Below, in pieces: positions 29,716 to 63,208 of a DNA stretch of 64,000 nucleotides. Each line of letters begins with the position of its first letter. Position 1 is the stretch's first letter. The translations under genes and the position numbers were made by a program. The notes beneath the pieces were generated by a model. That model saw only the letters and a list, made by a program, of their open reading frames with translations. It was not told where the DNA came from and did no database searches. The stretch lies in the sequence record LR756502.1. One strand, written 5' to 3'.

Positions 29716-29724
29716 CAAATAAAA

Positions 29725-29803
29725 CGGTACATACCGAGCCACACTGATAATGTGGATATTCGTAGCGGTGTTGTAAACGTGGGTTCAAATCCCTCTGTAC
29801 CGA
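29725..29803 (+). tRNA. D-armless tRNA-like RNA, Ile(GAU) anticodon
   Basis: CGGTACA/TGTACCG; CCACA-CTGATAA-TGTGG; variable region CGTAGCGGTGTTGTAAAC. Confidence 0.7.
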
Positions 29804-29808
29804 CAAAT

Positions 29809-29887
29809 GCCCTTGTAGTCGAGTCAGTTTTCTAAACTGTTAATCGTAATGGAAAGGAAGATGCAGGTTCGAATCCTGTCTAGGGTA
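29809..29887 (+). tRNA. D-armless tRNA-like RNA, Arg(UCU) anticodon
   Basis: CAGT-TTTCTAA-ACTG; variable region with CGTAATGG; normal T-arm. Confidence 0.6.
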
Positions 29888-29894
29888 CATAAAT

Positions 29895-29977
29895 GCTCCC
29901 GTGGTGGAACGGCAGACACGCCAGATTTAGGATCTGGTATCCGAAAGGATGTGAGAGTTCGAGTCTCTCCGGGAGTA
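29895..29977 (+). tRNA. tRNA-Leu(UAG)
   Basis: CCAGA-TTTAGGA-TCTGG, V-arm. Confidence 0.9.
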
Positions 29978-29985
29978 CAAAATAT

Positions 29986-30025
29986 TACTGAGTTGCCGTA
30001 GTGGCCTAACGGTCCATCAGTAGCA
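29986..30025 (+). pseudogene. tRNA fragment: acceptor stem + D-arm only
   Basis: TACTGA/TCAGTA encloses GCCG-TAGTGGCCTAA-CGGT; no anticodon or T-arm. Confidence 0.5.
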
Positions 30026-30030
30026 AAAAT

Positions 30031-30103
30031 GCCCCTGTAGCTTAATCGGGAAAGCGCTGTTTTTACATGACAGATAGAGTCGGATCGTAACCGGCCAGGG
30101 GTA
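30031..30103 (+). tRNA. tRNA-Val(UAC)
   Basis: CTGTT-TTTACAT-GACAG. Confidence 0.85.
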
Positions 30104-30110
30104 CAAAAAT

Positions 30111-30184
30111 TGTCACTTAGCTCAAATGGTCAGAGCGCGAACCTGATAAGTTCGAGGTACTGGGATCGTTACCCAGAGTGACAA
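30111..30184 (+). tRNA. tRNA-Ile(GAU)
   Basis: CGAAC-CTGATAA-GTTCG. Confidence 0.9.
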
Positions 30185-30191
30185 CATAAAT

Positions 30192-30274
30192 GGTACCGTG
30201 GCCGAGCGGAGTCGTAAGACGAGAGGCAGTGATCTGCAAAATCACTCACACTGGTTCAATCCCAGTCGGTACCT
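30192..30274 (+). tRNA. tRNA-Cys(GCA) with extra hairpin in the D-loop
   Basis: GTGAT-CTGCAAA-ATCAC, U73; GTC-GTAA-GAC inside the D-loop. Confidence 0.8.
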
Positions 30275-30292
30275 CAAGTGTTTAAATAAAAC

Positions 30293-30364
30293 GCTTCTTA
30301 AGCATTAATGGTGATGCACTAGTCTTGTAAACTAGAGAAATCGGATCGTTACCGGTAAGAAGCT
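30293..30364 (+). tRNA. tRNA-Thr(UGU)
   Basis: CTAGT-CTTGTAA-ACTAG. Confidence 0.9.
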
Positions 30365-30370
30365 CAAAAT

Positions 30371-30442
30371 TGGAGATTAGCTTAATGGGAAAGCGTTACC
30401 TTGACATGGTAGAGAGAGTGGGATCGTTACCCACATTTCCAA
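30371..30442 (+). tRNA. tRNA-Val(GAC)
   Basis: TTACC-TTGACAT-GGTAG. Confidence 0.85.
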
Positions 30443-30462
30443 CAAATAATGGATGGTGACTG

Positions 30463-30536
30463 AGAGAGTTACTTCGTGATTGGTACACAATTTGACTCAA
30501 AATCAAACTTACGGGGTTCAAATCCCCACACTCTTT
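30463..30536 (+). pseudogene. Degenerate Leu(CAA) tRNA-like gene, no V-arm
   Basis: TTTGA-CTCAAAA-TCAAA and T-arm present; acceptor and D-arm imperfect. Confidence 0.5.
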
Positions 30537-30557
30537 CGAAACTTTCCTCCATTACTT

Positions 30558-30637
30558 GCCAATGTGGCTCAGCGGCGACAGCACCGCTTTTGTAAAGCGG
30601 AACACAAACAGCGGGGGTTCGAGTCCCTCCATTGGCT
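30558..30637 (+). tRNA. tRNA-Thr(UGU) with 12-nt unpaired variable loop
   Basis: CCGCT-TTTGTAA-AGCGG. Confidence 0.85.
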
Positions 30638-30642
30638 CAAAT

Positions 30643-30715
30643 GCCTTTATGACGTAATTGGTAGTCGTATGCGCCTTAGAAGCGTAGTGTCTCGGTTCGA
30701 GTCCGAGTAGAGGTA
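30643..30715 (+). tRNA. tRNA-Leu(UAG) lacking the variable arm
   Basis: TGCGC-CTTAGAA-GCGTA then only GTGT before the T-arm. Confidence 0.8.
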
Positions 30716-30725
30716 CAAAATTAAT

Positions 30726-30800
30726 GCCCCGGTGACGTAATAGAGTTAGTCGTATCCGGCTTAAAATCGGAGTGCATGGGTTCGAGTCCCATCTGGGGTA
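30726..30800 (+). tRNA. tRNA-Leu(UAA) lacking the variable arm
   Basis: TCCGG-CTTAAAA-TCGGA then only GTGC before the T-arm. Confidence 0.8.
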
Positions 30801-30815
30801 CAAATGGTGTTAATT

Positions 30816-30899
30816 GCATCAGTGGCGGAATGGTATACGCGAGGGTCTTAAAAACCCTTGGTCATTATGATCGTGTGGGTTCGAGTCCCATCTGGTGTA
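30816..30899 (+). tRNA. tRNA-Leu(UAA)
   Basis: AGGGT-CTTAAAA-ACCCT, V-arm. Confidence 0.9.
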
Positions 30900-30959
30900 C
30901 AAAATGATAGACGTTTTGGAAATTACTCTTTTTTGTTTTCCATAATTTATATATAGATT

Positions 30960-31394
30960 ATGGTAAAATATGACAAAGAGGAATTTATAAGTGTTTGTGA
31001 GGACAGTCCTACAATGGCTAGAGCGGCTTCTAAATTAGGTATTCATTTTAATACCTTTAGAAGGATAGCTGTTAAGTTGAATTGTTATAGAACAAATCAG
31101 TCCGGAAAGGGTTTAACTAAAAAGAGCGATAGAGGAACACCTTTGTCAGAAATTCTTGAGGGAAAACATCCACAATTTCAATCATTTAAATTGAAAAATA
31201 AATTGATAAAGGAAGGAATAAAAGAGAATAGATGTGAGGTTTGTAATATAAGTGAATGGAATGGGAAAGTGATAAATTGTGAACTAGACCATATAGATGG
31301 TAATAGCAGAAATCACAGATTGGAAAATCTAAGAATACTGTGTCCAAATTGTCACTCACAAACTGATACATTTAGAGCAAAGAATATAAAATAA
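30960..31394 (+). CDS. HNH endonuclease inside the tRNA array
   Basis: CEVC..ELDHIDGNSRNHRLENLRILCPNCH. Confidence 0.9.
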   Translation: MVKYDKEEFISVCEDSPTMARAASKLGIHFNTFRRIAVKLNCYRTNQSGKGLTKKSDRGTPLSEILEGKHPQFQSFKLKNKLIKEGIKENRCEVCNISEWNGKVINCELDHIDGNSRNHRLENLRILCPNCHSQTDTFRAKNIK

Positions 31395-31610
31395 ATGGAG
31401 TATCTATGTGATAATGCAAGACATCTAGTTTGTAAACCTTATTCAATTGAGAATCTACATAAGATGGCCGAGGAACTAAACATTAAGAGATGTTGGTTTC
31501 ATAAGAATCATTATGATATTCCAAAAAGAAGAATAGATGAAATTACAATTAAGTGTAAACTAATTTCATCTAAAGAGATAGTAGATATTATAAATATTGA
31601 TATAGCTTAA
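31395..31610 (+). CDS. Small conserved protein (DUF4031-like)
   Basis: HLV..SIENLHKMAEEL.IKR.WF..HYDIP. Confidence 0.55.
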   Translation: MEYLCDNARHLVCKPYSIENLHKMAEELNIKRCWFHKNHYDIPKRRIDEITIKCKLISSKEIVDIINIDIA

Positions 31611-31667
31611 TGATAGAGCGGCGGCCTTATATGCCGTTAGTCCAGTGTTTGATTCCTGGTATCGATA
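31596..31667 (+). tRNA. tRNA-Ile(UAU)
   Basis: GCGGC-CTTATAT-GCCGT; overlaps the end of the upstream ORF. Confidence 0.75.
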
Positions 31668-31672
31668 CAAAA

Positions 31673-31745
31673 GCAGTAGTCGTATAAGCGGTTATTACAC
31701 GCCCTTGGTAAGGGTGAGACTCCAGTTCGATTCTGGACTTCTGCT
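31673..31745 (+). tRNA. tRNA-Thr(GGU)
   Basis: CGCCC-TTGGTAA-GGGTG. Confidence 0.9.
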
Positions 31746-31750
31746 CAAAT

Positions 31751-31832
31751 GCACAGATGGCGTAACAGGTAGCCGCGCTGGTCTAAGAAGCCAGTATTGA
31801 GAAATGTAGGGGTTCGATTCCCCTTCTGTGTA
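31751..31832 (+). tRNA. tRNA-Leu(AAG)
   Basis: CTGGT-CTAAGAA-GCCAG, V-arm; A34. Confidence 0.8.
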
Positions 31833-31843
31833 CTAAAATAAAT

Positions 31844-31913
31844 GCCGTGGCTTAGTGGAAAAGATCCAGCTCTCATAAGGCCGGTTAAGTGAGTTCGAAC
31901 CTCATACACGGTA
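31844..31913 (+). tRNA. CAU-anticodon tRNA (Met or lysidine-Ile), partly degenerate
   Basis: CTCATAA loop, T-arm intact, acceptor/D junction short. Confidence 0.55.
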
Positions 31914-31933
31914 CTAAGGCAGGGAAGATACTG

Positions 31934-32016
31934 GCTGGAATGGTGGAATGGTATACACACTGAGCTCAAACCTCAGTATCTAATAGATGATGAGGGTTCG
32001 AGTCCCTCTTTCAGTA
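31934..32016 (+). tRNA. tRNA-Leu(CAA)
   Basis: CTGAG-CTCAAAC-CTCAG, V-arm. Confidence 0.9.
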
Positions 32017-32081
32017 CTAAATATTTGTATATGTTAGAATTAAAAACTAATCCTTATATTTGTAAAATAAAATTTAATAAA

Positions 32082-32426
32082 ATGGAAAAGAACGAAGTAA
32101 AGAAGTATTTATATAGAAACAAAGAGTTGATGGCTAAGTTTAGTCACTATGTCTCAGGTAATTTATACTACACCGTGCAATTAGAAGATGGTGTTTATCA
32201 ATTCCCTATTTCGACAGTCGATAAAGTAAATACTCCACTTTTTAGATTAGATGGAAAGACACAAGCAAGTCCAAGTATCTCTATGTCTTATACAAGAGTA
32301 ATTGAGGAATATTCAACTCTTTCATCTGACTTGGGTACAACCGATTTTAGTGCTGAAATTAAAGCCAGCTTCTTAAATAGGTGGATCGATAAGGCAATTG
32401 ATAAGGGAGAGTTTATCAAGTTATAA
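32082..32426 (+). CDS. Hypothetical protein
   Basis: Start ATG 32082 after TAnnTTTG promoter. Confidence 0.55.
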   Translation: MEKNEVKKYLYRNKELMAKFSHYVSGNLYYTVQLEDGVYQFPISTVDKVNTPLFRLDGKTQASPSISMSYTRVIEEYSTLSSDLGTTDFSAEIKASFLNRWIDKAIDKGEFIKL

Positions 32427-32431
32427 AAAAT

Positions 32432-32504
32432 GACACCGTAGTTAAACTGAACATAACAAATTCCTCCTAAGAATTAGTTCCGGGTTTGAGTCCCAGCGGA
32501 GTCA
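32432..32504 (+). tRNA. tRNA-Arg(CCU)
   Basis: AATTC-CTCCTAA-GAATT. Confidence 0.8.
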
Positions 32505-33070
32505 CAAAATAAATTAGGCAGATTGAAAAATTATGCAAAATGAATCAGTTTTTAATGAACACTTTAATCTTATTTAATATGAGTTATCTTACAAAGCAAG
32601 AGAAACAGATGGTCGAACAAATGAAACAGACCACTAAGAGTGAGTATTATTATGATAATCCTTCTGCTGCTATTGATGATATTGAATATCTTTTAAGTAT
32701 CGTTAGACGACTTGATGATAAACTAACTGACTTAACTGAGGAATTATAATGACAGATTCACAAAAGAAACTAATTGAAGACTATATTGATAAGTATGGTG
32801 GGGTAAATCTTATAGAACTTGAAAAGACCAATATGGTTCAACTTCAACTTGACTTTAATATGGTTAGAATGGAAGGAATATCCTTCTACTGGTTAGAAAA
32901 GTTCTCAAAGGAATTTTTTGAAATCAGTGTTGGTGTAGCTGATAAGACTAATGAAAAGTATGGAGCTTTTATTACAATGTTTACAATTGATATTTATGAT
33001 AGTAATTAAAATTATATTAACCTTTATAGTAATATTCTCCTTATATTTATAGGATTAAAGATAACCCTAT

Positions 33071-36501: not shown

Positions 36502-36565
36502 TTTGTAAAACTGATATATTCTCCGTATATTTGTATTTCTAATAACCACTAAAAATCAAAAAAAT

Positions 36566-38038
36566 ATGAATATCGTAACAAGAATAGCGCCTTCACCGAC
36601 AGGATCCTTCGCCCATATTGGGAACGTAAGAACTCTATTGTATAATTACTTTCTAGCTAAGCGTCACGGAGGTAAATTCCTTGTGCGTCTAGAAGATACT
36701 GACCGTGATCGATATACACCTTCGTTCCTTAACTATTTTAAGGACATGTGTGATTGGTTAGGAATAGTTCCTGATGCTTCTTACTGGAGCCCAGATACAT
36801 CTATTGGAACCTTTGTTCAATCAACAACTGACTATTCTACTAAGATTAATTTCTTACTTGATAATGGGTTTGCTTATTATGCTTTCGATTCTAAAGACGA
36901 TTTGGATAAGGCACATAAGTCAATTGCTAATTTCAAATATGATTCCACTACTCGTTTGAGTATGAAGAACTCTCTAACTATGTCTAAGGACGATGTTGCT
37001 AACGCAATTGTAACAACTCCTTATGTTATTCGTTTTATGGTGTCTCCAAATATCGATATAACTGTTAATGATGCAATCCTTGGTGATATCAAAATCAGTT
37101 CAAATACTATCGATGATAAAGTTTTAATGAAGTCCAACGGGGTTCCATCATATACATTGGCTAATGTTTGTGACGATCACGATATGGGGATTACTCACGT
37201 GCTTCGTGGTAACGAGTGGGTACCTTCCACACCTTGTCATATTCTACTTTACAAGGCGTTTGGTTGGGATGTTCCTACATTTGCTCACTTACCATTGATT
37301 ATGAATCCAGATGGTAAAGGCAAACTATCTAAGAGAACTGCTGCTAAGTATGGTATTCCAATTGCCCCATTAGGTTATACTGATGGTGATGGTATCTATG
37401 TAAATGGTTGGAAAGACCTTGGGTACGATCCAAAAGCTTTCATAAACGCTTTATCCTTAATTGGTTGGAATCCTGGACATGATGTTGAAATTATGTCAAT
37501 GGGTGATATGATTAAAAACTTCTCACTTGACCGTGTTCATAAGGCCGGTGCTCGTTTTGATATGGATAAGGCTAAATGGATTAACTCTCAATATATTAAG
37601 AATACACCAAACTCTTGTTTGCTTCCTTATATTGATGTTAAAGATGATAGGTACTCTGATGATAAGTTAGATATGATTATATCTTTAGCTAAAGATAGAT
37701 CTGACTTCAAATACGATTTGAATAAAATTGTAGATTTATTCTTCAATGATCCAATCATTAAAGACTATTCAAAGATTGATGATAACTATACAAGAGTTAT
37801 GTCAACATTCAACTATAAGATTGACTCAGTTGACTTTAGTGATGTTAATTTAATTAAAGATAGTATATCAAAAATCTGTGACGATTTAGGTGTTAAGATG
37901 GGTAAAGTAATGCCTGGATTAAGAATGGCTTTGGTTGGTGGAATTGCTGGTCCTGACTTAATGACAACAATGTTAATTCTTGGTAAAGACCAAGTTAAAG
38001 ATAGAATTATCAAATCTGGTAAAAGAGTAACTGTGTAA
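36566..38038 (+). CDS. gltX: Glutamyl-tRNA synthetase
   Basis: RIAPSPTG..HIGN, RLEDTD, DDHDM.ITHVLRG.EW, KLSKR, anticodon-binding helical domain. Confidence 0.95.
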   Translation: MNIVTRIAPSPTGSFAHIGNVRTLLYNYFLAKRHGGKFLVRLEDTDRDRYTPSFLNYFKDMCDWLGIVPDASYWSPDTSIGTFVQSTTDYSTKINFLLDNGFAYYAFDSKDDLDKAHKSIANFKYDSTTRLSMKNSLTMSKDDVANAIVTTPYVIRFMVSPNIDITVNDAILGDIKISSNTIDDKVLMKSNGVPSYTLANVCDDHDMGITHVLRGNEWVPSTPCHILLYKAFGWDVPTFAHLPLIMNPDGKGKLSKRTAAKYGIPIAPLGYTDGDGIYVNGWKDLGYDPKAFINALSLIGWNPGHDVEIMSMGDMIKNFSLDRVHKAGARFDMDKAKWINSQYIKNTPNSCLLPYIDVKDDRYSDDKLDMIISLAKDRSDFKYDLNKIVDLFFNDPIIKDYSKIDDNYTRVMSTFNYKIDSVDFSDVNLIKDSISKICDDLGVKMGKVMPGLRMALVGGIAGPDLMTTMLILGKDQVKDRIIKSGKRVTV

Positions 38039-43687: not shown

Positions 43688-46384
43688 ATGTTAAAAAGAA
43701 TATTTCTAAGTTGTGCAATCCTCCTCTTGTCTTTGTATACAAAGGCTCAAATGGTAGGAACCGACGCATATATACAAGGTACTAGCGTTGAAATTGGTAT
43801 TAATGGATTAGGTGGATATGAGGGAGTTAACCAAACTACATCACCACCTCCAGCGGGATATCATGCTCGTGGTACATTTCTACCATTTGGATTTATTGCA
43901 AATCCCCAGGTAAATTCTTGGGCTACTTATGATGGTGACTTTTTTACTCCTGGTAGTCCAGAGAATGGTTGGGGATTCCAAATTGGGTCAACAACCGGAT
44001 CCGCTAACTCTAGAGGTAATAATTGTGCTGGTTTGCAACAAATTAATGGTAGTTTTACAAACTGGTCTCATAACTTCAACTGTTATAATGCTACATGGGA
44101 AGGAGATTACACTTCGGCAACAGACATTCACTTTACTATAAGTTATGATCTTGTTCAGACTGATTTATTTTACACAACAACTGTTTCTATAACAAATAAT
44201 ACTACTGCTACTATTCCAGATTTATATTACTATAGAAATGTTGACCCTGATAATAATGAGGAGATAAGTGGTACCTTTACAACAACACAAACAATAGTAA
44301 GTCAACCAGCTTCTGGTTGTAACCTAGCACACGTTCAGGCCACATCACCAACACCTTGGAACTCGTATCTTGGGTTTGCTGCTATTGGTGCTAATTGGAG
44401 AGCAGACTATGGTGGATTTAGTAATAGAGCCGCTGCTGATTTATGGACTGGTCTTGGATTTACACAAACTGTTGGTGCCACAAATACCGCAGATGAGGGA
44501 ATATCACTAGCATATAGAATACAAAATCTTGCTCCAGGTGCTACAGAAACATTTAAATTTGTGGTTATTTTAGACCCATCATCAGCTACGGCAGCAATTA
44601 ACAACCTACTTTACTTATCATATCCAGGTTCATTAACAGCTCCGCCATCTGTTTGTACACCTTATGCCGATACAATTAGAACATGTGGTGGACCAGTTCC
44701 TATTAACATTGCCGGACCTATTGTTGGTGATTTTAGCTGGACGTGGACACCAACTACTGGTTTAACACCAATTACTGGACCATCTGTTAGTGCTAACCCT
44801 AGTGTAACAACAACATATACCGCAGTTGGTACACCTTTAAGCGCTTGTGTAACACCGGTTTCACTAACATTTGTTGTTTTAATAACTCCGGGTGGTGGAA
44901 CCGCACCTTATATAACACCAGTTGCTCCAGTATGTATCACGACACCACCTTTTAATTTTGTGGCTGATACTCTTGGTGGAGTATGGAGTGGAACAGGAAT
45001 TAGTCCTACAGGAACCTTTAATCCCGCAACTGCTGGAGCTGGTACGTATTTAATAACATATACGACAACCAATACTTGTAATCCTATAGATACAACATAT
45101 ATTACAGTAAGTGGTTCAGACCCTACAATAACTACACATATTCCTGTTTGTGCAGGTTCCTCACCTTATACTTTAACTGCCGCATCTACTGGTGGTGTAT
45201 GGAGTGGTGGTGGAATTAGTCCTACAGGAGTTTTTACACCTAGTACTGCCGGTACTTTTGTTATAACATACACACTTTCAGGGTTGTGTGCAGCAACAGA
45301 TACCGTAACATTAGTTGTAAACCCAACCGTACCACCGATAACAGGTATTTCATACATCACACCTGTATGTATAAGTGGTACTAACCCAACACCAATACCT
45401 GTATCAGGATTCACTGTCGGTGGTGTATATAGTTCAACACCAGGATTATCTTTGAATACTGGAACTGGAGTTGTAAATTTAGCGGGTAGTACACCTGGTA
45501 CATATACAATAACATATTCTTATGCAGCAACTGTTTGTGGACCGGCAGGTTCAAGTAGTACAACTTTAGTTATAACTCCACTAATAGTGCCAGTTTTAGG
45601 ATTCTCATATAATAGTGTTTGTGTTGATGGTGTTGATCCATCCCCTATCACAGTTGCTGGATTTACAACCGGTGGTGTTTACTCATGTCCTGGTTTATCA
45701 ATAAACCCAGCAACTGGAGTAATAGACTTATCATCTAGTTCACCTGGTACATATACTGTTACATATACTGTTACAGGATCATCTGTTCTATGTACCTCTG
45801 GTGGTACTAGTACATCTACTATAACTATTAAACCACTTCCGGTTATAATTATATCTTCTGATCAAACAATATTTCTTGGTCAAAGTACGCTTATATTTGC
45901 TAGTGGTGGAACAATATATAATTGGAGTCCCTCACAAGGGTTGAATACAACTACTAATGATAGTGCTATTGCTTCACCAGTTGTAACAACAACATATTGT
46001 GTTGGTGTTTCTAGTTTAGGTTGTATTGATACAATGTGTGTTAAAGTTAATGTTGAAATTCCTTGTCCAAGTAATAGAAATATGGGAGTACCAAATGCAT
46101 TTACTCCAAATGGTGATGGTAATAATGATCAACTATGTTTAGATGGTTGGGATGATTGTATCTCAAACTTTGAAATAAGAATATTTGACCGTTGGGGTGA
46201 GAAAGTATTTGAATCTAAAAATCCTGGCTTTTGTTGGGATGGTGTGTATAAGGGTAAGCCTTTAGATCCAGCTGTCTTTGTTTACTACATTACTGCATCA
46301 TATAATGTTGATGGTGTTTTACCAACATCACAGACAAGTACTACTAAGGTTAATAAAACAGGAAATATCTCATTGATTAGATAA
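43688..46384 (+). CDS. Secreted Thr/Gly/Pro-rich surface protein with T9SS type B (gliding-motility-associated) C-terminal domain
   Basis: Signal peptide; repeated Ig/PKD-like units (GGVWSG.GI...G.F.P); VPNAFTPNGDG.ND..IFDRWGEKVFES..WDG.YKG. Confidence 0.88.
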   Translation: MLKRIFLSCAILLLSLYTKAQMVGTDAYIQGTSVEIGINGLGGYEGVNQTTSPPPAGYHARGTFLPFGFIANPQVNSWATYDGDFFTPGSPENGWGFQIGSTTGSANSRGNNCAGLQQINGSFTNWSHNFNCYNATWEGDYTSATDIHFTISYDLVQTDLFYTTTVSITNNTTATIPDLYYYRNVDPDNNEEISGTFTTTQTIVSQPASGCNLAHVQATSPTPWNSYLGFAAIGANWRADYGGFSNRAAADLWTGLGFTQTVGATNTADEGISLAYRIQNLAPGATETFKFVVILDPSSATAAINNLLYLSYPGSLTAPPSVCTPYADTIRTCGGPVPINIAGPIVGDFSWTWTPTTGLTPITGPSVSANPSVTTTYTAVGTPLSACVTPVSLTFVVLITPGGGTAPYITPVAPVCITTPPFNFVADTLGGVWSGTGISPTGTFNPATAGAGTYLITYTTTNTCNPIDTTYITVSGSDPTITTHIPVCAGSSPYTLTAASTGGVWSGGGISPTGVFTPSTAGTFVITYTLSGLCAATDTVTLVVNPTVPPITGISYITPVCISGTNPTPIPVSGFTVGGVYSSTPGLSLNTGTGVVNLAGSTPGTYTITYSYAATVCGPAGSSSTTLVITPLIVPVLGFSYNSVCVDGVDPSPITVAGFTTGGVYSCPGLSINPATGVIDLSSSSPGTYTVTYTVTGSSVLCTSGGTSTSTITIKPLPVIIISSDQTIFLGQSTLIFASGGTIYNWSPSQGLNTTTNDSAIASPVVTTTYCVGVSSLGCIDTMCVKVNVEIPCPSNRNMGVPNAFTPNGDGNNDQLCLDGWDDCISNFEIRIFDRWGEKVFESKNPGFCWDGVYKGKPLDPAVFVYYITASYNVDGVLPTSQTSTTKVNKTGNISLIR

Positions 46385-46410
46385 ATCTACTAATTTTACT
46401 TATATTTAAA

Positions 46411-46564
46411 CCCTCGGATAAAAATTCGAGGGTTTTTGTTTAAAAGAATTAATATATAACCTATGAGACACATGAAAAAATTTAATGCCCTCGGATAAAA
46501 ATTCGAGGGTTTTTGTTTAAAAGAATTAATATATAACCTATGAGACACATGAAAAAATTTAATG
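46411..46564 (+). repeat. Perfect 77-bp tandem duplication (terminator + TAATATATA + MRHMKKFN start)
   Basis: 46411-46487 identical to 46488-46564. Confidence 0.9.
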
Positions 46565-49957: not shown

Positions 49958-50119
49958 ATGAAAAACTTAATCTTAAATATCGCAATTCAAGTACAACGTC
50001 AAGTTGTTGTCGATCAGGATCAACCGGATACGACTGAGGCTAATTGCGATTTTATAAGAGAGTAAAATAATACTTGAATTATACAAACCCAGTTAGTCTA
50101 TGATTAACTGGGTTTTTTT
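49958..50119 (+). promoter_or_regulatory. Attenuator 7: leader MKNLILNIAIQVQRQVVVDQDQPDTTEANCDL (49958-50056) + terminator (50085-50119)
   Basis: Asp x4, Gln x5, Pro; GGCTAATTG (50038-50046) pairs with CAGTTAGTC (50090-50098); followed by Pro/Asp tRNAs. Confidence 0.75.
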
Positions 50120-50130: not shown

Positions 50131-50203
50131 CGCGAAGTGACTGAGGTTTAAGCGAGAGTGGTCTGGAGCCATTTTTTAGTCAGTTCGATTCTGACCTTCG
50201 CGA
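50131..50203 (+). tRNA. Atypical tRNA-Pro(UGG), C33/A37
   Basis: C1:G72, A73; AGTGG-TCTGGAG-CCATT. Confidence 0.65.
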
Positions 50204-50211
50204 CAAAATTA

Positions 50212-50286
50212 CGGAAATTGGGCTAATTGGTAAGCCGCTTCATTTGGGATGAAGACATCGTGTGGGTTCAAGTCCCGCATTTCCGA
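50212..50286 (+). tRNA. tRNA-Pro(UGG)
   Basis: CTTCA-TTTGGGA-TGAAG. Confidence 0.9.
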
Positions 50287-50291
50287 CAAAT

Positions 50292-50366
50292 GGCTCGTGG
50301 TACTGCACGGTGTGGTAACCTGTTTGTCAAACAGGATACAGATGGGATCATTACCCATACGAGTCA
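50292..50366 (+). tRNA. tRNA-Asp(GUC)
   Basis: CCTGT-TTGTCAA-ACAGG; unusual D-arm, A73. Confidence 0.8.
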
Positions 50367-50371
50367 CAAAA

Positions 50372-50443
50372 GGTCTATTAGTGAAATGGCTATCATCCCA
50401 CACTGTCACTGTGGAGTAGACGGATCGAAACCGTCATAGACCG
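50372..50443 (+). tRNA. tRNA-Asp(GUC)
   Basis: CCACA-CTGTCAC-TGTGG, G73. Confidence 0.9.
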
Positions 50444-50508
50444 CAAGAGATTAATTTGGAATCTTAAACCTTGCAAAAGCGAGGACTGGTAATATTTTAA
50501 TCTCATAT

Positions 50509-50583
50509 GGTTCGTGGAACTGCACGGTGTGGTTACTTGATTGTCAATCAGGACACAGACGGGATCGTTACCCGTACGAATCA
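50509..50583 (+). tRNA. tRNA-Asp(GUC), paralogue of 50292
   Basis: CTTGA-TTGTCAA-TCAGG. Confidence 0.8.
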
Positions 50584-50588
50584 CAAAA

Positions 50589-50662
50589 CGAGAAGTGACT
50601 AAGGCTTTAAGCACGGGTGATCAGGAGTCATCTGTTAGTGGGTTCAATTCCAACCTTCTCGA
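50589..50662 (+). tRNA. Atypical tRNA-Pro(AGG), C33/A37
   Basis: C1:G72, A73; GGTGA-TCAGGAG-TCATC. Confidence 0.65.
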
Positions 50663-50670
50663 CAAATATA

Positions 50671-50744
50671 AAGATGTTGATCGTCTAATGAAAGGTTCCC
50701 CTACGGAGGGGAGGGTTTGGGTTTGATTCCCAAGAGACGTTTTT
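50671..50744 (+). pseudogene. Degenerate tRNA-Arg(ACG)
   Basis: TCCC-CTACGGA-GGGA and T-arm; weak acceptor. Confidence 0.5.
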
Positions 50745-50752
50745 ATGTTAAC

Positions 50753-50822
50753 GGTGCTGTCGTCTAATGATAGGATGCTCCCATTGGAGGGAGTGATGTA
50801 GGTTTGATTCCTAACTGTACCG
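50753..50822 (+). pseudogene. tRNA-like gene with 6-nt anticodon loop (ATTGGA)
   Basis: CTCCC-ATTGGA-GGGAG; D- and T-arms present. Confidence 0.5.
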
Positions 50823-50833
50823 CAAAAATAATA

Positions 50834-50902
50834 CGAGATGTAGCCTATTGGCATGAGGCACTAGTTTTGTGAACTAGACGAAGCAGGTTCCTGTCATCTC
50901 GA
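50834..50902 (+). pseudogene. Pro-type body with UGU anticodon and deleted T-loop
   Basis: CGAGATG/CATCTCG; CTAGT-TTTGTGA-ACTAG; GCAGG-TT-CCTGT. Confidence 0.55.
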
Positions 50903-50936: not shown

Positions 50937-51052
50937 ATGACAACTTCATTTCAGCAACAACAGCAACAACAAATTAATCGAACAGATTGATGTGGAATGA
51001 TATTGTTTAAATATTACACCCGTTAGTCTGAGGAGATTAACGGGTTTTTTAT
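50937..51052 (+). promoter_or_regulatory. Attenuator 8: poly-Gln leader MTTSFQQQQQQQINRTD (50937-50990) + terminator (51018-51052)
   Basis: 7 consecutive CAG/CAA codons; CAGATTGATG (50983-50992) pairs with CGTTAGTCTG (51021-51030); followed by 4 tRNA-Gln and glnS. Confidence 0.9.
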
Positions 51053-51123
51053 TGTCCGATAGTGTAGAGGTAACACAAGGGTCTTTGGTCCCCTTATCAC
51101 TGGTTCGATCCCAGTTCGGATAA
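51053..51123 (+). tRNA. tRNA-Gln(UUG)
   Basis: U1:A72; CTTTGGT loop. Confidence 0.85.
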
Positions 51124-51130
51124 CAAATAT

Positions 51131-51214
51131 TGCGGAATCCCATAATGGCATTGGTCCTGACTTTGAATCAGGTGGAATGAAAATTCTGTGTAGGTTCGAA
51201 TCCTACTTCCGCAT
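51131..51214 (+). tRNA. tRNA-Gln(UUG) with long variable arm
   Basis: CCTGA-CTTTGAA-TCAGG; V-arm GGAAT-GAAA-ATTCT. Confidence 0.85.
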
Positions 51215-51219
51215 CAAAT

Positions 51220-51292
51220 TCCTCTTTGGTCTAATGGCTAATGACGTGTCCCTTTGACGGATAAGGTGGTGGTTCGATTCCATCAAGAGGAA
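51220..51292 (+). tRNA. tRNA-Gln(UUG)
   Basis: TGTCC-CTTTGAC-GGATA. Confidence 0.85.
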
Positions 51293-51297
51293 CAAAA

Positions 51298-51369
51298 TGT
51301 CTTATAATATAATGGTTAGTATAACCGCCTCTGAAGCGGTTTGTCTTGGTTCGAGTCCAGGTGAGACAA
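51298..51369 (+). tRNA. tRNA-Gln(CUG)
   Basis: ACCGC-CTCTGAA-GCGGT. Confidence 0.9.
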
Positions 51370-51397
51370 CTAAAAATTAATTTAAACTAAAACAATT

Positions 51398-52999
51398 ATG
51401 AATTTCATTGAAGATAAAATAATAGAGAAAAATAACTTAGATAAACTAAAGTTAAGATTTCCACCAGAAAACTCAGGTTATATCCACCTGGGTCATGCCA
51501 AATCTATCTGTCTTAATTTTGGACTAGCATTAAAATATAACAGACCTTGTAATTTAAGGTTTGATGATACTAACCCATCCAATGAATCTGACGATTTCAC
51601 AAGATCAATAATTGAAGATATCAAATGGTTAGGATTCACACCATCTGAGACTCTATATACCTCTGATTATTTCTCTGAACTATACAACTATGCAATCATC
51701 CTAATTAGAAAAGGATTAGCTTACGTTGATGATTCAACATCAGAAGAAATTGCCTTATTAAAAGGAACACCAACATCTGTTGGTAAAGATTCTCCATATA
51801 AATCAAGAACTATCGAAGAGAACTTAGACTTATTCAATAGAATGAAATTAGGTGAATTCACAGAGGGTTCTAAAACACTTAGAGCAAACATTGATATGAC
51901 TTCATCTAATATGATATTGAGAGATCCTATCATATATAGAATGATTAATAAGACACACCACAATGTTGGTGATGCTTGGAAGATATATCCAATGTATGAT
52001 TTTGCACATCCATTGTCTGACTATATTGAAGGTATAACTGACTCTTTGTGTACTATGGAATTTGAGGTACATTTGCCTTTATATATGTGGGTATTGAAAA
52101 ATTGTGATTTAAAAAATTCTTTACCGGAAGAAACTGAGTTTGCTCGATTGAACATTGATTTTACAATAATGAGTAAGAGAAAACTAAAGAGATTAGTTGA
52201 AGAAGGATTTGTTTCTGGATGGGATGATCCAAGAATGCCTACTATCTCTGGATTAAGAAGAAGAGGATTTACACCAAAAAGTATTAGAGATTTTTGTGAA
52301 GAAATTTCTGTAACAAGAAGTAACTCTATAATTAGTCATAAAGTATTAGAAGAGTGTTTAAGAACAGATTTGAATAAGTCAGCTAATAGAATGATGGGTG
52401 TTATTGACCCTGTTAAATTGACTATTACTAATTGGGTTGGTGGTACTGAATGGGTTGAAATAGAGAATAACCCAGAAGATCCAAACGCTGGAACTAGATT
52501 GGTTCCTTTTACTGGAGTGTTGTGGATTGAGATAGAAGACTTTAGATTAGAAGCTGATAAGAAATTTCACAGATTAAAGTTGAATGAAGAAGTTAGATTA
52601 AAAGGTGGATACGTTGTTAAAGCAACCGATGTTGTTATGAATGGTGATGTTATATCTGAGATAAAATGTACATTCGATCCTAACTCTAAATCTGGAATGG
52701 TTTTAGATAGAAAGGTAAAAGGAGTAATTCACTGGGTATCTGTTGAACACGCTGTTAACTTAGATGTTAATGAGTATGATACTTTATTTACTGAATCTAA
52801 TCCTGATGATTTAGAAGATTTTACAACTTGTATTAATCCTAATTCTTTAATTGTGAATACAAAGGCTATGTTTGAACCACATATAATGGCACTTGAAGTT
52901 GGTGTTCCGGTTCAAATGATGAGAAAAGGATATTATTGTCTTGACAAGGATGGTGTTTTTAACAAGACCGTTTCATTGAAAGAAGGTTGGAAAGGATAA
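51398..52999 (+). CDS. glnS: Glutaminyl-tRNA synthetase
   Basis: RFPPENSGYIHLGHAK, LRFDDTNP, YPMYDFAH, SKRKL, GWDDPRMPTI.GLRRRG, VKGVIHWVS. Confidence 0.95.
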   Translation: MNFIEDKIIEKNNLDKLKLRFPPENSGYIHLGHAKSICLNFGLALKYNRPCNLRFDDTNPSNESDDFTRSIIEDIKWLGFTPSETLYTSDYFSELYNYAIILIRKGLAYVDDSTSEEIALLKGTPTSVGKDSPYKSRTIEENLDLFNRMKLGEFTEGSKTLRANIDMTSSNMILRDPIIYRMINKTHHNVGDAWKIYPMYDFAHPLSDYIEGITDSLCTMEFEVHLPLYMWVLKNCDLKNSLPEETEFARLNIDFTIMSKRKLKRLVEEGFVSGWDDPRMPTISGLRRRGFTPKSIRDFCEEISVTRSNSIISHKVLEECLRTDLNKSANRMMGVIDPVKLTITNWVGGTEWVEIENNPEDPNAGTRLVPFTGVLWIEIEDFRLEADKKFHRLKLNEEVRLKGGYVVKATDVVMNGDVISEIKCTFDPNSKSGMVLDRKVKGVIHWVSVEHAVNLDVNEYDTLFTESNPDDLEDFTTCINPNSLIVNTKAMFEPHIMALEVGVPVQMMRKGYYCLDKDGVFNKTVSLKEGWKG

Positions 53000-53030
53000 T
53001 TTTCCAACCTTTCTTTTTAATATATAACCT

Positions 53031-53894: not shown

Positions 53895-54161
53895 ATGAAA
53901 AATATTAAAACATTTGAATTATTTAGTGATTGGTTTAAGTCTAAGGAACAAAATGCTCGTGAGGAGATGTTTGGTACAAAAAACTTAGAAAAAAAATCAG
54001 AAGATGTTCAGAAACTAATAGATGAGATAATACTAAACCAAGGTACTAGTTTAGATCACAGAAATGATAGATTTAAAGTGTATAGTGACGTAGAGTTATC
54101 AAATATGTCCGATGATGAAATTACTAGTATTTGGCAGCAAATAACTGGGAATAGGTATTAG
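53895..54161 (+). CDS. N-terminal-tag protein (MKNIKTFELF)
   Basis: Shared motif. Confidence 0.6.
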   Translation: MKNIKTFELFSDWFKSKEQNAREEMFGTKNLEKKSEDVQKLIDEIILNQGTSLDHRNDRFKVYSDVELSNMSDDEITSIWQQITGNRY

Positions 54162-54213
54162 AAAAAAAATAAATAAATTAGAACAAATCAAAAAATTTAT
54201 ATATATTTGTAGA

Positions 54214-54338
54214 ATGAGAAAGATAATTAAATTAAAAGATGATCGTTATTTATGGACTGACTGCCTCGCAGATTAGTGATAGATAACTATTACCTATAAT
54301 CTTCAAACCCAGTCAGAAATGACTGGGTTTTTTATTTT
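54214..54338 (+). promoter_or_regulatory. Attenuator 9: leader MRKIIKLKDDRYLWTDCLAD (54214-54276) + terminator (54305-54338)
   Basis: Asp x4; CTGACTG (54257-54263) pairs with CAGTCAG (54310-54316); directly before aspS. Confidence 0.8.
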
Positions 54339-54362
54339 AAACAAAAATTAAAAAAATATATT

Positions 54363-55640
54363 ATGAAAAGAATAAACGTAAATCAATTAGAAAACTTTAT
54401 CGGTCAAACTGTACTGGTAAAAGGATGGGTATCTCAATTTAGAGAACTTAAAAAAATGTCTTTCCTTATTTTAAGAGAAAGAACTGGATATTGTCAAATC
54501 ATTATCCCAAAAGAAATTAGTGAATCACTTTCACCTGAGTCTGTTGTCGAGGTTATCGGAACAGTTAAAGTAGAAAGTCAATCTCGTTATGGTGGTTATG
54601 AAATTGTAGCTGAGTCAGTTAAAGTAACATCAGTTGCCCAACTACTTCCTTTTCCTATAAACAGAGAAGAAGGTATTCCCGCTTTCAACACATTAAACAT
54701 ATTTAGACCTTTAACATTAAGAAAGGAAAAAGAAAGATGTATATTCAAAATTCAATCTGAGATTATCTGGGCTTATAGAGAATATTTAAGAAGTCAAGGG
54801 TTTACTGAAATACAATCTACTAAAATGTCTGCAGCTGGATTAGAAGGTGGATCAGAAATGTTTGAGATAGAATACTTTGGTCAAAAAATGTATTTAACTC
54901 AATCACCACAGTTTTATAAACAAATGATGGTTGGTGTTTATGAAAGAGTATTTGAAGTTGGTAAAGTTTACCGTGCTGAAGGTTCTAACTCCAACAAACA
55001 CTTAACCGAGTTTGTTGGTTTTGAATTCGAAATGGGATTCATTGAATCTGTTGAAGAAGTTATGCAAATGGAAGAAAATGTATTTGAGTATATCTTTACT
55101 CACTTAACATCTGTTTGTGAGAAAGAATTGGGATATTTAGAAGTAGAACTTAAATTTAATCCTATTCCAAGAGTAACTTACGCTGAGGTGATTGAGATTA
55201 TAAAAAATGAATATGGAATTACTTATGAGAAAGTAGGATTAAATACTGAAGCTGAAAGATTAATTTCTGAGTATATCTTTAGTAAGACTGGTTCTGAATT
55301 TGTTTTCATTACAAAATATCCACTTTCAGAAAGACCGTTCTATGCAATGCCTTCTGTTGAAGAAGGATGTTCAGAGACATTTGAATTGTTATATAAGGGA
55401 ATGGAGATTACTTCTGGTGGTCAACGTATTCATAACTATGAAGAATTAGTAAAATCAATTGAGTCTAAGGGATTAAACCCAGAAGCTTTTGAAAGTTACT
55501 TAATGGCTTTTAAGTTTGGAATGCCAACACATGGTGGTATGGGTATTGGATTAGAAAGAGTTGTTAAACAGATGTTAAATTTATCATCAGCTGAAGAAGC
55601 TTCTTTAATTCCAAGAACAAAAGAGAAGTGGATACACTAA
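54363..55640 (+). CDS. aspS: Aspartyl-tRNA synthetase, short archaeal/non-discriminating type
   Basis: OB-fold N-terminus, LTQSPQFYKQ, YRAE..HLTEF, EITSGGQRIH, PTHGGMGIGLER; no GAD insertion. AsnRS not fully excluded. Confidence 0.85.
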   Translation: MKRINVNQLENFIGQTVLVKGWVSQFRELKKMSFLILRERTGYCQIIIPKEISESLSPESVVEVIGTVKVESQSRYGGYEIVAESVKVTSVAQLLPFPINREEGIPAFNTLNIFRPLTLRKEKERCIFKIQSEIIWAYREYLRSQGFTEIQSTKMSAAGLEGGSEMFEIEYFGQKMYLTQSPQFYKQMMVGVYERVFEVGKVYRAEGSNSNKHLTEFVGFEFEMGFIESVEEVMQMEENVFEYIFTHLTSVCEKELGYLEVELKFNPIPRVTYAEVIEIIKNEYGITYEKVGLNTEAERLISEYIFSKTGSEFVFITKYPLSERPFYAMPSVEEGCSETFELLYKGMEITSGGQRIHNYEELVKSIESKGLNPEAFESYLMAFKFGMPTHGGMGIGLERVVKQMLNLSSAEEASLIPRTKEKWIH

Positions 55641-62159: not shown

Positions 62160-63098
62160 AAAAAGTCTACCCCTTCGTCCTCGATGGGTAATATCCAAAT
62201 AAAGACGCAAATAGGATGTTTCAGACTTTGTACCAAGCTTCGACTTCGGTTGTTGTGTAGGTAGGGCGGCTTATAGTCCTTAAATAAACCTCGAAAGGGG
62301 GATAAAGTGAGTATCATTGCTAAATGATATTTGCGGTTTGAACTGAAAGGTTTGAGCTCGAGTAAGCAAGCGAAATACCACAAAATCTGTAGTAATGAGG
62401 GTAACTCCGTAGTGAAACGATTTTGTGATTGGGTGAACGTAGGTCACTTGATTGACTTCGGAAGAAGAACAGGAATAATTCGTAGGAATTTTGTGAGAAA
62501 TATCGGCTTAACCGGCTAGTATGATTGCGAGTTCTAATTCAAGAGATGTCTTAAAGTTGAAAGACAATTCTTCTACCAGGTGGTGCTGTTGAAGAACATT
62601 AATCTGACTACCAAGTTGGTAGGTATCATCGCAAGGTGGTATCGTGATGAAGAAATCTTAAAGAATTGTGATGGAGGCATCACACAGAGTAGTTCAGTAT
62701 TTTGTCTGTCAAAAACGGATGAAGCTGAGAGGAGACCACTACTTTGACTTAATCTACAAGCACAAAAAATTTACTTATGATGTAAAAACTATAACTAAAT
62801 CAAAAGTGTTTCCTAGTTATCAATGAAAATTGACTACTTAGCCGTGAGTTGTTCACGGTCACATTAAGCCCGAAAGGCGGATGTGATTTCAGAGAAAAGC
62901 TTATAGAGGGTCGAACCTCTAATCAGTTCGCAAGACTGAATAAGTGGAGTAAATGGAGAATAGTTGATAACTTAAGGAGTGGTTGGTCTAACTAACCGTC
63001 ATTGACAAGTTACTACTCAAAAGGTAGTGGATAGATTTGGGAATAAATAATCCAAACAGAGGCTTGTTGTTTTAGGATGTAATCTCAGTCCTTTTTTT
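62160..63098 (+). ncRNA. Large (~0.9 kb) structured ncRNA, GOLLD/ROOL-class candidate
   Basis: No credible ORF, higher GC, many hairpins (CCTC-GAAA-GGGG, GAG-GGTAA-CTC, TATCATC-GCAA-GGTGGTA, GTGATG/CATCAC, CCGTGA/TCACGG, AGAGG/CCTCT), flanked by tRNAs, ends in U-tract. Family not verified. Confidence 0.7.
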
Positions 63099-63100
63099 AT

Positions 63101-63173
63101 GGCCTTTTCGTCTAGTGGTTAGGACGAATATCTTTTCAGATATTAAACAGCGGTTCGAATCCGTTAAAGGCTA
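63101..63173 (+). tRNA. tRNA-Glu-type gene with 8-nt anticodon loop
   Basis: GGCCTTT/AAAGGCT; AATAT-CTTTTCAG-ATATT. Confidence 0.75.
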
Positions 63174-63177
63174 CAAC

Positions 63178-63208
63178 AACCCACCGATCTGGTGGGTTTT
63201 TTTATTTT
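63178..63208 (+). terminator. Intrinsic terminator
   Basis: AACCCACC-GATCT-GGTGGGTT followed by T-tract. Confidence 0.85.

Follow-up and report, generated by a model that had tools for sequence, protein, structure and literature searches.

The 150 nt that precede the aspartyl-tRNA synthetase gene (aspS) of a giant phage look like a genuine ribosome-mediated (leader-peptide) transcription attenuator, in which a short Asp-containing reading frame and a terminator hairpin would together sense Asp-tRNA(Asp). The unit is one of at least eight such predicted switches in the window analyzed here (a 64,000-nt stretch of sequence record LR756502.1), most of which lie before tRNA gene arrays, a target for which our literature searches found no prior description. 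An earlier note had inferred attenuation analogous to that of pheST from four Asp codons and a CTGACTG/CAGTCAG complement directly before aspS. All of these features are present, and the interpretation is supported by comparison with related loci, although the note understated its scope. The phage is known only as an uncultured metagenomic assembly and the evidence is entirely computational, but we regard attenuation as the likely explanation.

Anatomy of the aspS leader

The leader ORF (54214–54276; the Asp unit, aspS, and all modules below are on the plus strand) comprises 20 codons plus a stop and reads MRKIIKLKDDRYLWTDCLAD, with Asp at codons 9, 10, 16, and 20. The Asp codons 9 and 10 (GAT GAT, 54238–54243) constitute the predicted ribosome stall site and lie in the 5′ strand of a long leader hairpin (region 1). 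Strand A (ACTGACTGC, 54256–54264), the 5′ half of the antiterminator, contains the CTGACTG motif at 54257–54263, inside codons 15–17. It is followed by strand B (GCAGATTAGT, 54268–54277), which includes the last Asp codon and the TAG stop and forms an apical hairpin with strand A in the terminating conformation, and by a spacer (region 2, 54278–54301). The intrinsic terminator (54305–54335) is composed of an 11-bp stem with 5 G–C pairs, AAACCCAGTCA-GAAA-TGACTGGGTTT, followed by a T-run, with the 5′ arm (C) at 54305–54315 and the 3′ arm (D) at 54320–54330. The complement CAGTCAG (54310–54316) lies in the 5′ arm. Only 27 nt of A-rich sequence, without a TAnnTTTG box, separate the terminator from the aspS start codon at 54363, leaving no room for a promoter.

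A motif scan suggests a predicted Bacteroidota sigma-A promoter at 54178–54209, consisting of a −33-like element that reads TTAG (54178–54181) rather than TTTG, a 20-nt spacer, and the −7 box TATATTTG (54202–54209). The TAnnTTTG box lies at −12 to −5 in Flavobacterium transcription start site maps (PMC9723704), and this geometry would place +1 on the A of the leader ATG, in which case the leader mRNA would be leaderless. The start site is inferred, and a leaderless start is a minority mode in Bacteroidota, at 3.7–5.5% of mRNAs. One of the related loci (L009, below) has identical spacing, and the same 20-nt spacer occurs in several modules of the sister phage LR745206.1. A scan for sigma-70-type promoters, which is not relevant for a Bacteroidota host, showed no enrichment (51 sites against 43.7 expected).

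Taken alone, the two signals of the Asp unit are only modestly above chance. Four Asp in 19 codons gives a binomial p of 0.04 against the 7% Asp content of the window (0.14 for the unit in the sister phage), and the best duplex between the terminator arm and the leader gives p = 0.026 against 500 dinucleotide shuffles. Given that the genome carries 124 strong terminators and that AT-rich DNA is full of short ORFs, the hairpin could in principle be an ordinary terminator of the upstream genes, with the ORF and the 7-nt complement due to chance and AspRS expressed from an unrecognized promoter or by leaky read-through. We consider this very unlikely in light of the conservation of the unit and its membership in a family of 20 similar modules, as described below.

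Conservation and covariation of the unit

Four related huge-phage loci, L002 (from LR745206.1), L004 (from a 508-kb IMG/VR contig), L009, and L011, keep the same unit next to AspRS although the upstream genes differ, indicating that the unit travels with aspS. The orthologous leaders, all of 17–20 codons, are MKNIRLNDDRFLLTNCKADW (L002), MTIKRIKLADDCLTCLTVTD (L004), MREIMKLNDDRYFRLTV (L009), and MIRIFRVDDDRCLLTNCGTD (L011). A DD or DDD run is invariant in all five sequences and is followed by 12 nt before the antiterminator strand (11 nt in L004 and L009, counting the 8-nt strand; 13 nt to the paired CTGACTG core in the window and L002), and the stop codon lies 3–15 nt beyond strand A. The unit is confined to a sub-clade: AspRS relatives at 38–72% identity (L005, L006, L008, L010, and L012) have no leader or terminator, and in some of them an upstream ORF abuts the gene, while another relative, L003, carries a variant leader with a single Asp.

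The antiterminator pairing between strands A and C is likewise conserved. Of 8 aligned pairs across the five sequences, 100% of 39 cells are paired, with 2 compensatory pairs (A–U to U–A in L004 and A–U to G–C in the window), whereas slid controls give 3–38%. Because only five orthologs exist, 35 of 500 shuffles reach the observed covariation. The A:B hairpin (9 pairs, 97.7% of cells paired, 1 pair compensatory) and the terminator (11 pairs, 94.5% of cells paired) were recovered independently by RNAalifold and by pair counting. DNA-pattern scans of IMG/VR for further Asp leaders were uninformative, yielding only one chance hit in a GC-rich contig and failing to return even L004.

Proposed mechanism of attenuation

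These features suggest a model in which host RNA polymerase starts at the predicted promoter and a ribosome translates the 20-codon leader while the polymerase moves on. When Asp-tRNA(Asp) is plentiful, the ribosome would run to the stop codon and cover strand A (ACUGACUG); if no ribosome is present, the RNA would fold into the long hairpin, in which region 2 pairs with the Asp-codon region (1:2), with A:B at its tip. In both cases, the arm CCCAGUCA is free to pair with UGACUGGG, the terminator forms, and transcription stops 27 nt before aspS. When Asp-tRNA(Asp) is scarce, the ribosome would stall on the GAU GAU pair with its leading edge 2–3 nt short of strand A, assuming standard ribosome footprint sizes. 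Region 2 then loses its partner and pairs with B instead, A pairs with the 5′ arm of the terminator (CUGACUG:CAGUCAG), the terminator cannot form, and AspRS is made.

Constrained minimum free energy folds of all five orthologs agree with this model. Free RNA gives the long hairpin plus the terminator; with a ribosome blocked on the Asp run, A:C and B:2 form before the 3′ arm exists; and with a ribosome on the stop codon, no A:C forms. The conserved A:B hairpin can form before the terminator arm is transcribed, and antitermination therefore needs the B:2 refolding, which rests on these thermodynamic predictions only. Asp codons 16 and 20 are unlikely to be regulatory, as stalling at either would cover strand A and favor termination; codon 16 is not conserved as Asp, and conservation at these two positions is better explained by RNA pairing.

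A family of cognate leader modules

The Asp unit belongs to a set. Eight modules in the window, and eleven in the sister phage, place a leader rich in the cognate amino acids before a terminator that precedes, and is predicted to gate, tRNA arrays or synthetases. The Gln module (50937–51045; leader MTTSFQQQQQQQINRTD, 50937–50990; terminator 51018–51045) precedes 4 tRNA-Gln genes (51053–51370) and GlnRS (51398–52999), and its Gln run has a binomial p of 1.5e-8. It is conserved in the sister phage and in 7 further huge-phage contigs from IMG/VR, one of which has an unrelated terminator sequence and a matching, unrelated antiterminator strand. The Pro/Asp module (49958–50114; leader containing VVVDQDQPDTTE, 49958–50065; terminator 50086–50114), whose orthologs contain NPQPQ..DQDP, precedes the tRNA-Pro and tRNA-Asp array (50131–50902). 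The Lys/His/Phe/Trp module (930–1078; leader MRTINKHKHFSKLNKWFSNHRFEAKAFC, 930–1016; terminator 1051–1078) precedes tRNA Phe, His, Phe, Trp, and Lys ×3, and the Ser/Arg module (3420–3546; leader MKTTIKNTSSRSRSSKSGEVRLYS, 3420–3494; terminator 3519–3546) precedes tRNA-Arg(ACG), Ser(UGA), Ser(GCU), and Arg(UCG). The Glu/Tyr module (16948–17095; leader containing IETIGYTGYEGAYSE, 16948–17040; terminator 17066–17095), whose sister ortholog contains SYESYYEEG, precedes tRNA Glu, Tyr, Glu, Tyr, and Glu. The Ile/Gly/Ala module (17656–17788; leader containing ISVGVIAIGAGSV, 17656–17739; terminator 17764–17788), whose sister ortholog contains ISIAVIGNGAGAI, precedes tRNA Ile(UAU), Gly ×3, and Ala. Finally, the Asn/Leu/Thr/Val/Ile module (29158–29318; leader beginning MKTMNLNMNLNTLTVVNNTLCIRP, 29158–29262; terminator 29294–29318) precedes the large array at 29555–32505. 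In the sister phage, IleRS, AsnRS, and a LeuRS-like gene turned out to carry leaders with IIII, NN.N, and LLL.L, respectively. No close relatives of the IleRS were found in the phage collection or in IMG/VR, and the Ile module could not be compared across genomes.

The true pairing of the 8 window leaders with their downstream tRNA or synthetase sets is the single best of 40,320 permutations, and for the 11 sister-phage leaders, 0 of 200,000 permutations reach the observed score. All 20 modules carry a complement to the terminator 5′ arm at the 3′ end of the leader ORF, 19 of them at p < 0.05 (Fisher p = 1.3e-17). The match extends to codon choice: the Ser/Arg leader uses CGT, CGC, and CGA, which account for 12% of phage Arg codons (88% are AGR), before tRNA-Arg(ACG) and tRNA-Arg(UCG), and the sister Asn/Arg leader uses AGA before tRNA-Arg(UCU) ×2.

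One further module of the same architecture (w3, 5658–5755; leader MKTLHTYKNVIDWM, 5658–5702; a 9-bp antiterminator, duplex p = 0.004; terminator 5730–5755) has no recognizable cognate signal and precedes an operon with an RNA ligase and a HisRS-like fragment, without a tRNA or matching synthetase downstream; its function is unassigned. This module, together with the weak Asp enrichment of the aspS leader by itself, could indicate that the switches are real and depend on translation but report general translation capacity or transcription–translation coupling, for example ribosome availability after host shut-off, rather than the charging level of particular tRNAs. We consider this improbable, as a general sensor would not need the specificity observed at both the amino acid and codon levels.

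Alternatively, the leader could act as RNA only, with the codon runs binding uncharged tRNA anticodons or a protein directly, in the manner of a T-box or PyrR system, and the ORF incidental. Runs such as CAA/CAG ×7 could in principle pair with anticodons, and the alternative hairpins would work with any ligand that stabilizes one conformer. However, an Rfam search of the whole window gave no known leader, T-box, or riboswitch at gathering thresholds, and a search of 54100–54420 at E ≤ 10 gave only sub-threshold sRNA hits driven by the terminator (best score 21 bits against a gathering threshold of 50). Moreover, all 20 modules keep an ATG, an open frame, and a stop placed within −13 to +26 nt of the antiterminator strand; orthologs keep the amino acid while changing the synonymous codon (for example, Ser AGT/TCA/TCG/TCT in module w2 versus s2); and multi-amino-acid leaders have no fixed RNA motif. 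An RNA-only mechanism thus appears unlikely.

A census of the complete LR756502.1 genome for a terminator, a short ORF, and a downstream tRNA or ORF located cognate modules only in the tRNA island, that is, in the window, and other coincidences of small ORFs and terminators look incidental. Not every synthetase is associated with such a module, as GluRS in the same window (36566–38038) has a plain promoter and no terminator or attenuator.

Comparison with known systems

The E. coli pheST attenuator (pheM leader peptide) appears likewise to combine a short leader ORF rich in the cognate amino acid with alternative antiterminator and terminator hairpins before a synthetase gene, with ribosome speed at the cognate codons as the sensor. 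The Asp unit differs in that it is phage-encoded, sits in a predicted Bacteroidota-type promoter context, is probably leaderless, has only two adjacent regulatory codons, and has an extra conserved apical hairpin (A:B) acting as an anti-antiterminator; it has no sequence relationship to pheM. The trp, his, thr, and ilv leader-peptide attenuators of amino acid biosynthesis operons, including those predicted in Flavobacterium (PMC9723704), belong to the same mechanism class, and the multi-amino-acid leaders of ilv and thr parallel the Lys/His/Phe and Asn/Leu/Thr/Val leaders described here. In the phage, the regulated products would be tRNAs and synthetases rather than biosynthetic enzymes, and codon choice follows the anticodons of the downstream tRNAs, suggesting that isoacceptor supply is sensed rather than the amino acid pool. 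In addition, several attenuators sit in series inside one tRNA transcript (modules w7 then w8, and w4 then w5). T-box riboswitches upstream of synthetase genes in Firmicutes serve the same regulatory goal through a terminator/antiterminator choice, and a cellular AspRS relative found here (L015) does carry a T-box-like leader; however, a T-box binds the uncharged tRNA directly and needs no translation, and no specifier loop or T-box sequence is present in the Asp unit.

Dense tRNA clusters together with synthetase genes are known from large phages such as T4, T5, and the huge phages of Al-Shayeb et al. (2020), among which LR756502.1 is one of the published genomes. Such arrays are usually treated as constitutively or temporally expressed, and we found no report that they are gated by cognate leader peptides. 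Proposed reasons for their presence include codon-usage compensation, replacement of degraded host tRNAs, and evasion of tRNA-cleaving defenses. It is more likely than not, although undemonstrated, that the phage carries a codon-resolved supply-and-demand controller for its own translation kit, in which each tRNA sub-array or synthetase is switched on only when ribosomes slow down on the codons that these particular tRNAs decode. Such slowing could follow a mismatch between host tRNAs and the AT-rich phage codon usage, host shut-off, or host anticodon-nuclease defenses. This would be the first case of tRNA genes regulated by ribosome-mediated attenuation, would extend the mechanism to viruses and to serial gating within a single tRNA operon, and would give direct evidence that phage tRNAs are expressed on demand. 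The modules are compact (about 120–150 nt), and could be useful as synthetic sensors of tRNA charging in Bacteroidota.

Specificity of the synthetase

The gene downstream of the Asp unit (54363–55640) encodes a 425-aa archaeal/eukaryal-type class IIb AspRS, in which Pfam finds tRNA-synt_2 and an OB anticodon-binding domain (PF00152 and PF01336). The NCBIfam AspRS model NF003483 scores 469 bits against a cut-off of 353, whereas the AsnRS models score 220–235 bits, below their cut-offs (235 bits against 414 for one model). The best PDB relatives are all AspRS, the nearest structure being the non-discriminating Thermus AspRS2 (1N9W, E = 3e-99). The suggestion in the earlier note that the leader supports Asp rather than Asn specificity is thus supported for the amino acid, but these data do not bear on tRNA discrimination: the best NCBIfam and PDB relatives are named non-discriminating, and the phage has two tRNA-Asn genes, while tblastn with the AspRS, GlnRS, GluRS, and HisRS-like proteins of the window found no AsnRS or LysRS paralog in the genome. 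The sister phage has a separate AsnRS with its own Asn leader. Such leaders independently predict the specificity of adjacent phage synthetases, supporting Asp for this enzyme and Ile, Asn, and Leu for those in the sister phage.

Genomic setting of the Asp unit

The window corresponds to positions 372,001-436,000 of LR756502.1, a 642,428-bp uncultured megaphage genome that originates from a French freshwater lake (PMC9723777). It is 32.7% G+C and contains 44 of the 46 tRNA genes identified by ARAGORN in the genome, all on the + strand, as well as a few more that were detected at relaxed settings; the other two (Met and Arg) lie near 581.6 kb on the minus strand. The window also encodes a GOLLD RNA, GlnRS, GluRS, AspRS, and a HisRS-like fragment. 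TTTG-N19/20-TAnnTTTG promoter motifs point to a Bacteroidota host, as does the Bacteroidota-specific CHU_C type IX secretion sorting domain carried by an 898-aa protein (43688-46384).

The features described in an earlier note, which proposed that a short Asp-containing leader attenuates a phage AspRS, are all present. The ORF at 54214-54276 reads MRKIIKLKDDRYLWTDCLAD followed by a stop codon, and the sequence CTGACTG lies at 54257-54263. Its complement CAGTCAG is located at 54310-54316, inside the 5' arm of the hairpin AAACCCAGTCA-GAAA-TGACTGGGTTT, which is followed by a T-run (54305-54335), and aspS starts at 54363. On their own these signals are modest, with a p value of 0.04 for the Asp count and of 0.026 for the duplex between the terminator arm and the leader when compared against 500 dinucleotide shuffles.

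The 425-aa product of the downstream gene is an archaeal-type class IIb AspRS. The family model NF003483 scores 469 bits against a cut-off of 353, whereas the AsnRS models score 220-235 bits, below their cut-offs, and Pfam identifies PF00152 and PF01336. The best structurally characterized relative is Thermus AspRS2 (1N9W, E = 3e-99), followed by other AspRS structures, with AsnRS structures ranking lower.

Conservation of the Asp unit

In order to test whether the unit is conserved, we examined close AspRS relatives (62-85% identity), which were found in four other places: the sister megaphage LR745206.1 (locus L002), a 508-kb IMG/VR contig (L004), and two metagenome contigs (L009 and L011). 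The genes upstream differ from locus to locus, yet each locus carries the same unit next to aspS, with the leaders MKNIRLNDDRFLLTNCKADW (L002), MTIKRIKLADDCLTCLTVTD (L004), MREIMKLNDDRYFRLTV (L009), and MIRIFRVDDDRCLLTNCGTD (L011). Three features are constant, namely a run of two or three Asp codons, a distance of 11-13 nt from that run to the strand (A/U)CU(A/G)ACUG, and a stop codon situated 3-15 nt beyond that strand. The strand (hereafter A) always matches the start of the 3' arm of the terminator, so it always complements the 5' arm. In the five-sequence alignment, the antiterminator helix consists of 8 pairs, and 100% of 39 cells are paired. Two of the pairs have changed on both sides (A-U to U-A in L004 and A-U to G-C in the window), and slid controls pair in only 3-38% of cells. 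With only five sequences, 35 of 500 shuffles reach this level, and the test is supportive rather than decisive. RNAalifold independently returns a second conserved hairpin, A:B, in which B comprises the last Asp codon and the stop, in addition to the terminator, and pair counts confirm both helices.

The unit is not found with every AspRS gene. More distant AspRS relatives lack it, and one IMG/VR relative (L003, 1636-1851) carries a variant leader (MKTINTQDQLYLIH) with a single Asp between Gln codons after a tRNA-Gln. The terminator and antiterminator at this locus resemble those of the Gln module, which suggests that modules are shuffled between genes. A cellular AspRS relative with 47% identity (L015, 1170-1500) carries T-box-like sequences (GGTGGTACCGCG) upstream, and here the same regulatory need is met by a different device.

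A model for attenuation

Constrained folding of all five orthologs gives the same picture of how the Asp unit probably functions. In the free RNA, the Asp-codon region (region 1) pairs with the spacer (region 2), A:B forms at the tip, and the terminator, composed of the 5' arm (C) and the 3' arm (D), follows. To mimic a ribosome stalled on the Asp run before the 3' arm has been made, everything up to 10 nt past the last Asp codon of the run was blocked; region 2 then pairs with B, and A pairs with C to form the antiterminator. With a ribosome positioned on the stop codon, A is covered and no antiterminator forms. This is the classical attenuation logic with one extra element, the A:B hairpin, acting as an anti-antiterminator. 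Asp codons 16 and 20 are unlikely to be sensors, as codon 16 is not conserved as Asp and stalling at either codon would cover A; their conservation fits RNA pairing better.

In Flavobacterium the TAnnTTTG box occupies -12 to -5 (PMC9723704). In the window, TATATTTG lies at 54202-54209, which puts the inferred +1 exactly on the A of the leader ATG; L009 has identical spacing, and the AsnRS leader of the sister phage is 1 nt longer. The leader mRNA is therefore probably leaderless, an inference that should be viewed in light of the fact that leaderless mRNAs make up only 3.7-5.5% of transcripts in Bacteroidota. A recurrent motif (TTAATATATAA) that is distinct from the TAnnTTTG box lies 5-25 nt upstream of leader and gene start codons (for example at 916-926, 29136-29148, 46444-46456, and 53016-53026), and could be a second promoter class or a translation-initiation element.

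A family of cognate leader modules

Strong terminators sit directly upstream of almost every tRNA array in the window, and each is preceded by a short ORF whose composition mirrors the genes behind it. The leader MRTINKHKHFSKLNKWFSNHRFEAKAFC precedes tRNA Phe, His, Phe, Trp, and Lys x3, and the leader MKTTIKNTSSRSRSSKSGEVRLYS precedes tRNA Arg, Ser, Ser, and Arg. Leaders containing IETIGYTGYEGAYSE and ISVGVIAIGAGSV are followed by tRNA Glu, Tyr, Glu, Tyr, and Glu and by tRNA Ile, Gly x3, and Ala, respectively. The leader beginning with MKTMNLNMNLNTLTVVNNTL precedes tRNA Asn x2, Leu, Val, Ile, Thr, and more, a leader containing DQDQPD precedes tRNA Pro and Asp, and the leader MTTSFQQQQQQQINRTD precedes tRNA-Gln x4 and GlnRS. 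The true leader-to-array assignment is the single best of 40,320 permutations (Z-sum of 30.5, against a mean of 0.2 and an sd of 5.9).

The tRNA island of the sister phage contains orthologs of all these modules. It also encodes three aaRS genes that are absent from the phage studied here (L103 32399-34751, L103 40875-42197, and L104 5566-7096, all in LR745206.1), and each carries the expected leader and a terminator. These are MNFNTIIIIRYSIPWSIPIG before IleRS (TIGR00392, 674 bits), MKTMTINNRNRLTDII before AsnRS (NF003037, 414 bits), and MINNNVNILLLPLT before a LeuRS-like protein of 422 aa (TIGR00396, 390 bits, below its cut-off), which is about half the length of the 843-position bacterial LeuRS model. 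None of 200,000 permutations reaches the match observed in the sister phage. All 20 modules carry a complement of the terminator 5' arm that ends between -28 and +11 nt of the end of the leader ORF, with 19 of the 20 reaching p < 0.05 and a Fisher's combined p of 1.3e-17, and cognate codons lie 0-14 nt upstream of that strand. Seven further huge-phage contigs (55-519 kb) maintain the order of Gln leader, terminator, tRNA-Gln, and GlnRS. One of them has an unrelated terminator (AAGCCUGGAACU) and a matching unrelated strand (GGGUUCCGG).

Not every translation gene is gated in this manner. GluRS (36566-38038) has a textbook TTTG-N19-TATATTTG promoter (36503-36565) and a 5' UTR of about 30 nt, but no leader ORF or terminator, unlike GlnRS and AspRS. 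Conversely, one module (5658-5755) has the attenuator architecture, including a 9-bp antiterminator (UUGACUGG:CCAGUCAA), but its leader (MKTLHTYKNVIDWM) has no recognizable cognate signal and matches nothing downstream; the genes behind it, which extend to 7458, are two small basic ORFs, an RNA ligase (6171-6836), and a 210-aa HisRS-like class II core fragment (6826-7458). Outside the tRNA island the genome has no such modules.

Codon choice in the leaders provides evidence for translation as the sensor. Although 88% of the Arg codons of the phage are AGA or AGG, the Ser/Arg leader uses CGT, CGC, and CGA, which are the codons read by the downstream tRNA-Arg(ACG) and tRNA-Arg(UCG). The Asn/Arg leader of the sister phage uses AGA and is followed by two tRNA-Arg(UCU) genes. 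Leaders also use rare GCG, GGC, GGG, and TCG codons that the downstream tRNAs read, and orthologs keep the amino acid but vary the synonymous codon. These observations argue against an alternative in which the sensor is RNA only, and suggest that isoacceptor supply is monitored, not merely the amino-acid pool.

Relationship to known attenuators

In mechanism, the Asp unit is likely to be a leader-peptide attenuator, of the type probably exemplified by trp, his, ilv and, for an aaRS, E. coli pheST, and it satisfies every sequence-level criterion of that class. It is not a T-box. The interpretation offered in the earlier note is supported, and the sequence evidence gives us good, though not complete, confidence that this is a working Asp-sensing attenuator. 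The note further took the leader as support for Asp rather than Asn specificity of the enzyme; the leader speaks to the amino acid (Asp), not to whether the enzyme also charges tRNA-Asn, which remains plausible because its nearest relatives are named non-discriminating enzymes and the phage has tRNA-Asn genes but no AsnRS. Three aspects distinguish these switches from the known systems: they are phage-encoded, they gate tRNA gene arrays, in places as serial attenuators inside one tRNA transcript (window module w7 then w8, and w4 then w5), and their codons are matched to the downstream anticodons. No earlier description was found in full-text literature searches that did not extend to subscription-only papers.

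Other features of the tRNA island

At 1661-1930, 16572-16674, 17161-17246, and 51131-51215, several tRNAs are unusually long (Lys 82-89 nt, Glu 86 nt, and Gln 85 nt), and a tRNA-Met is predicted only with a 31-nt intron. The Rfam 'tRNA-Sec' hit at 3889-3975 is more likely tRNA-Ser(GCU). A GIY-YIG (SegE-like) homing-endonuclease ORF (18004-18804) sits inside the Gly tRNA array, between the Gly(UCC) pair and Gly(GCC). A tandem duplication of about 78 bp (46409-46510) carries a terminator hairpin plus the following TTAATATATAACCTATGAGACACATG start region, with the two terminators located at 46409-46434 and 46487-46510. Lastly, within 62685-63198, a full-length GOLLD RNA (275 bits, gathering threshold 150) is followed directly by an odd tRNA (63101-63174, anticodon not called) and a terminator (63178-63198).
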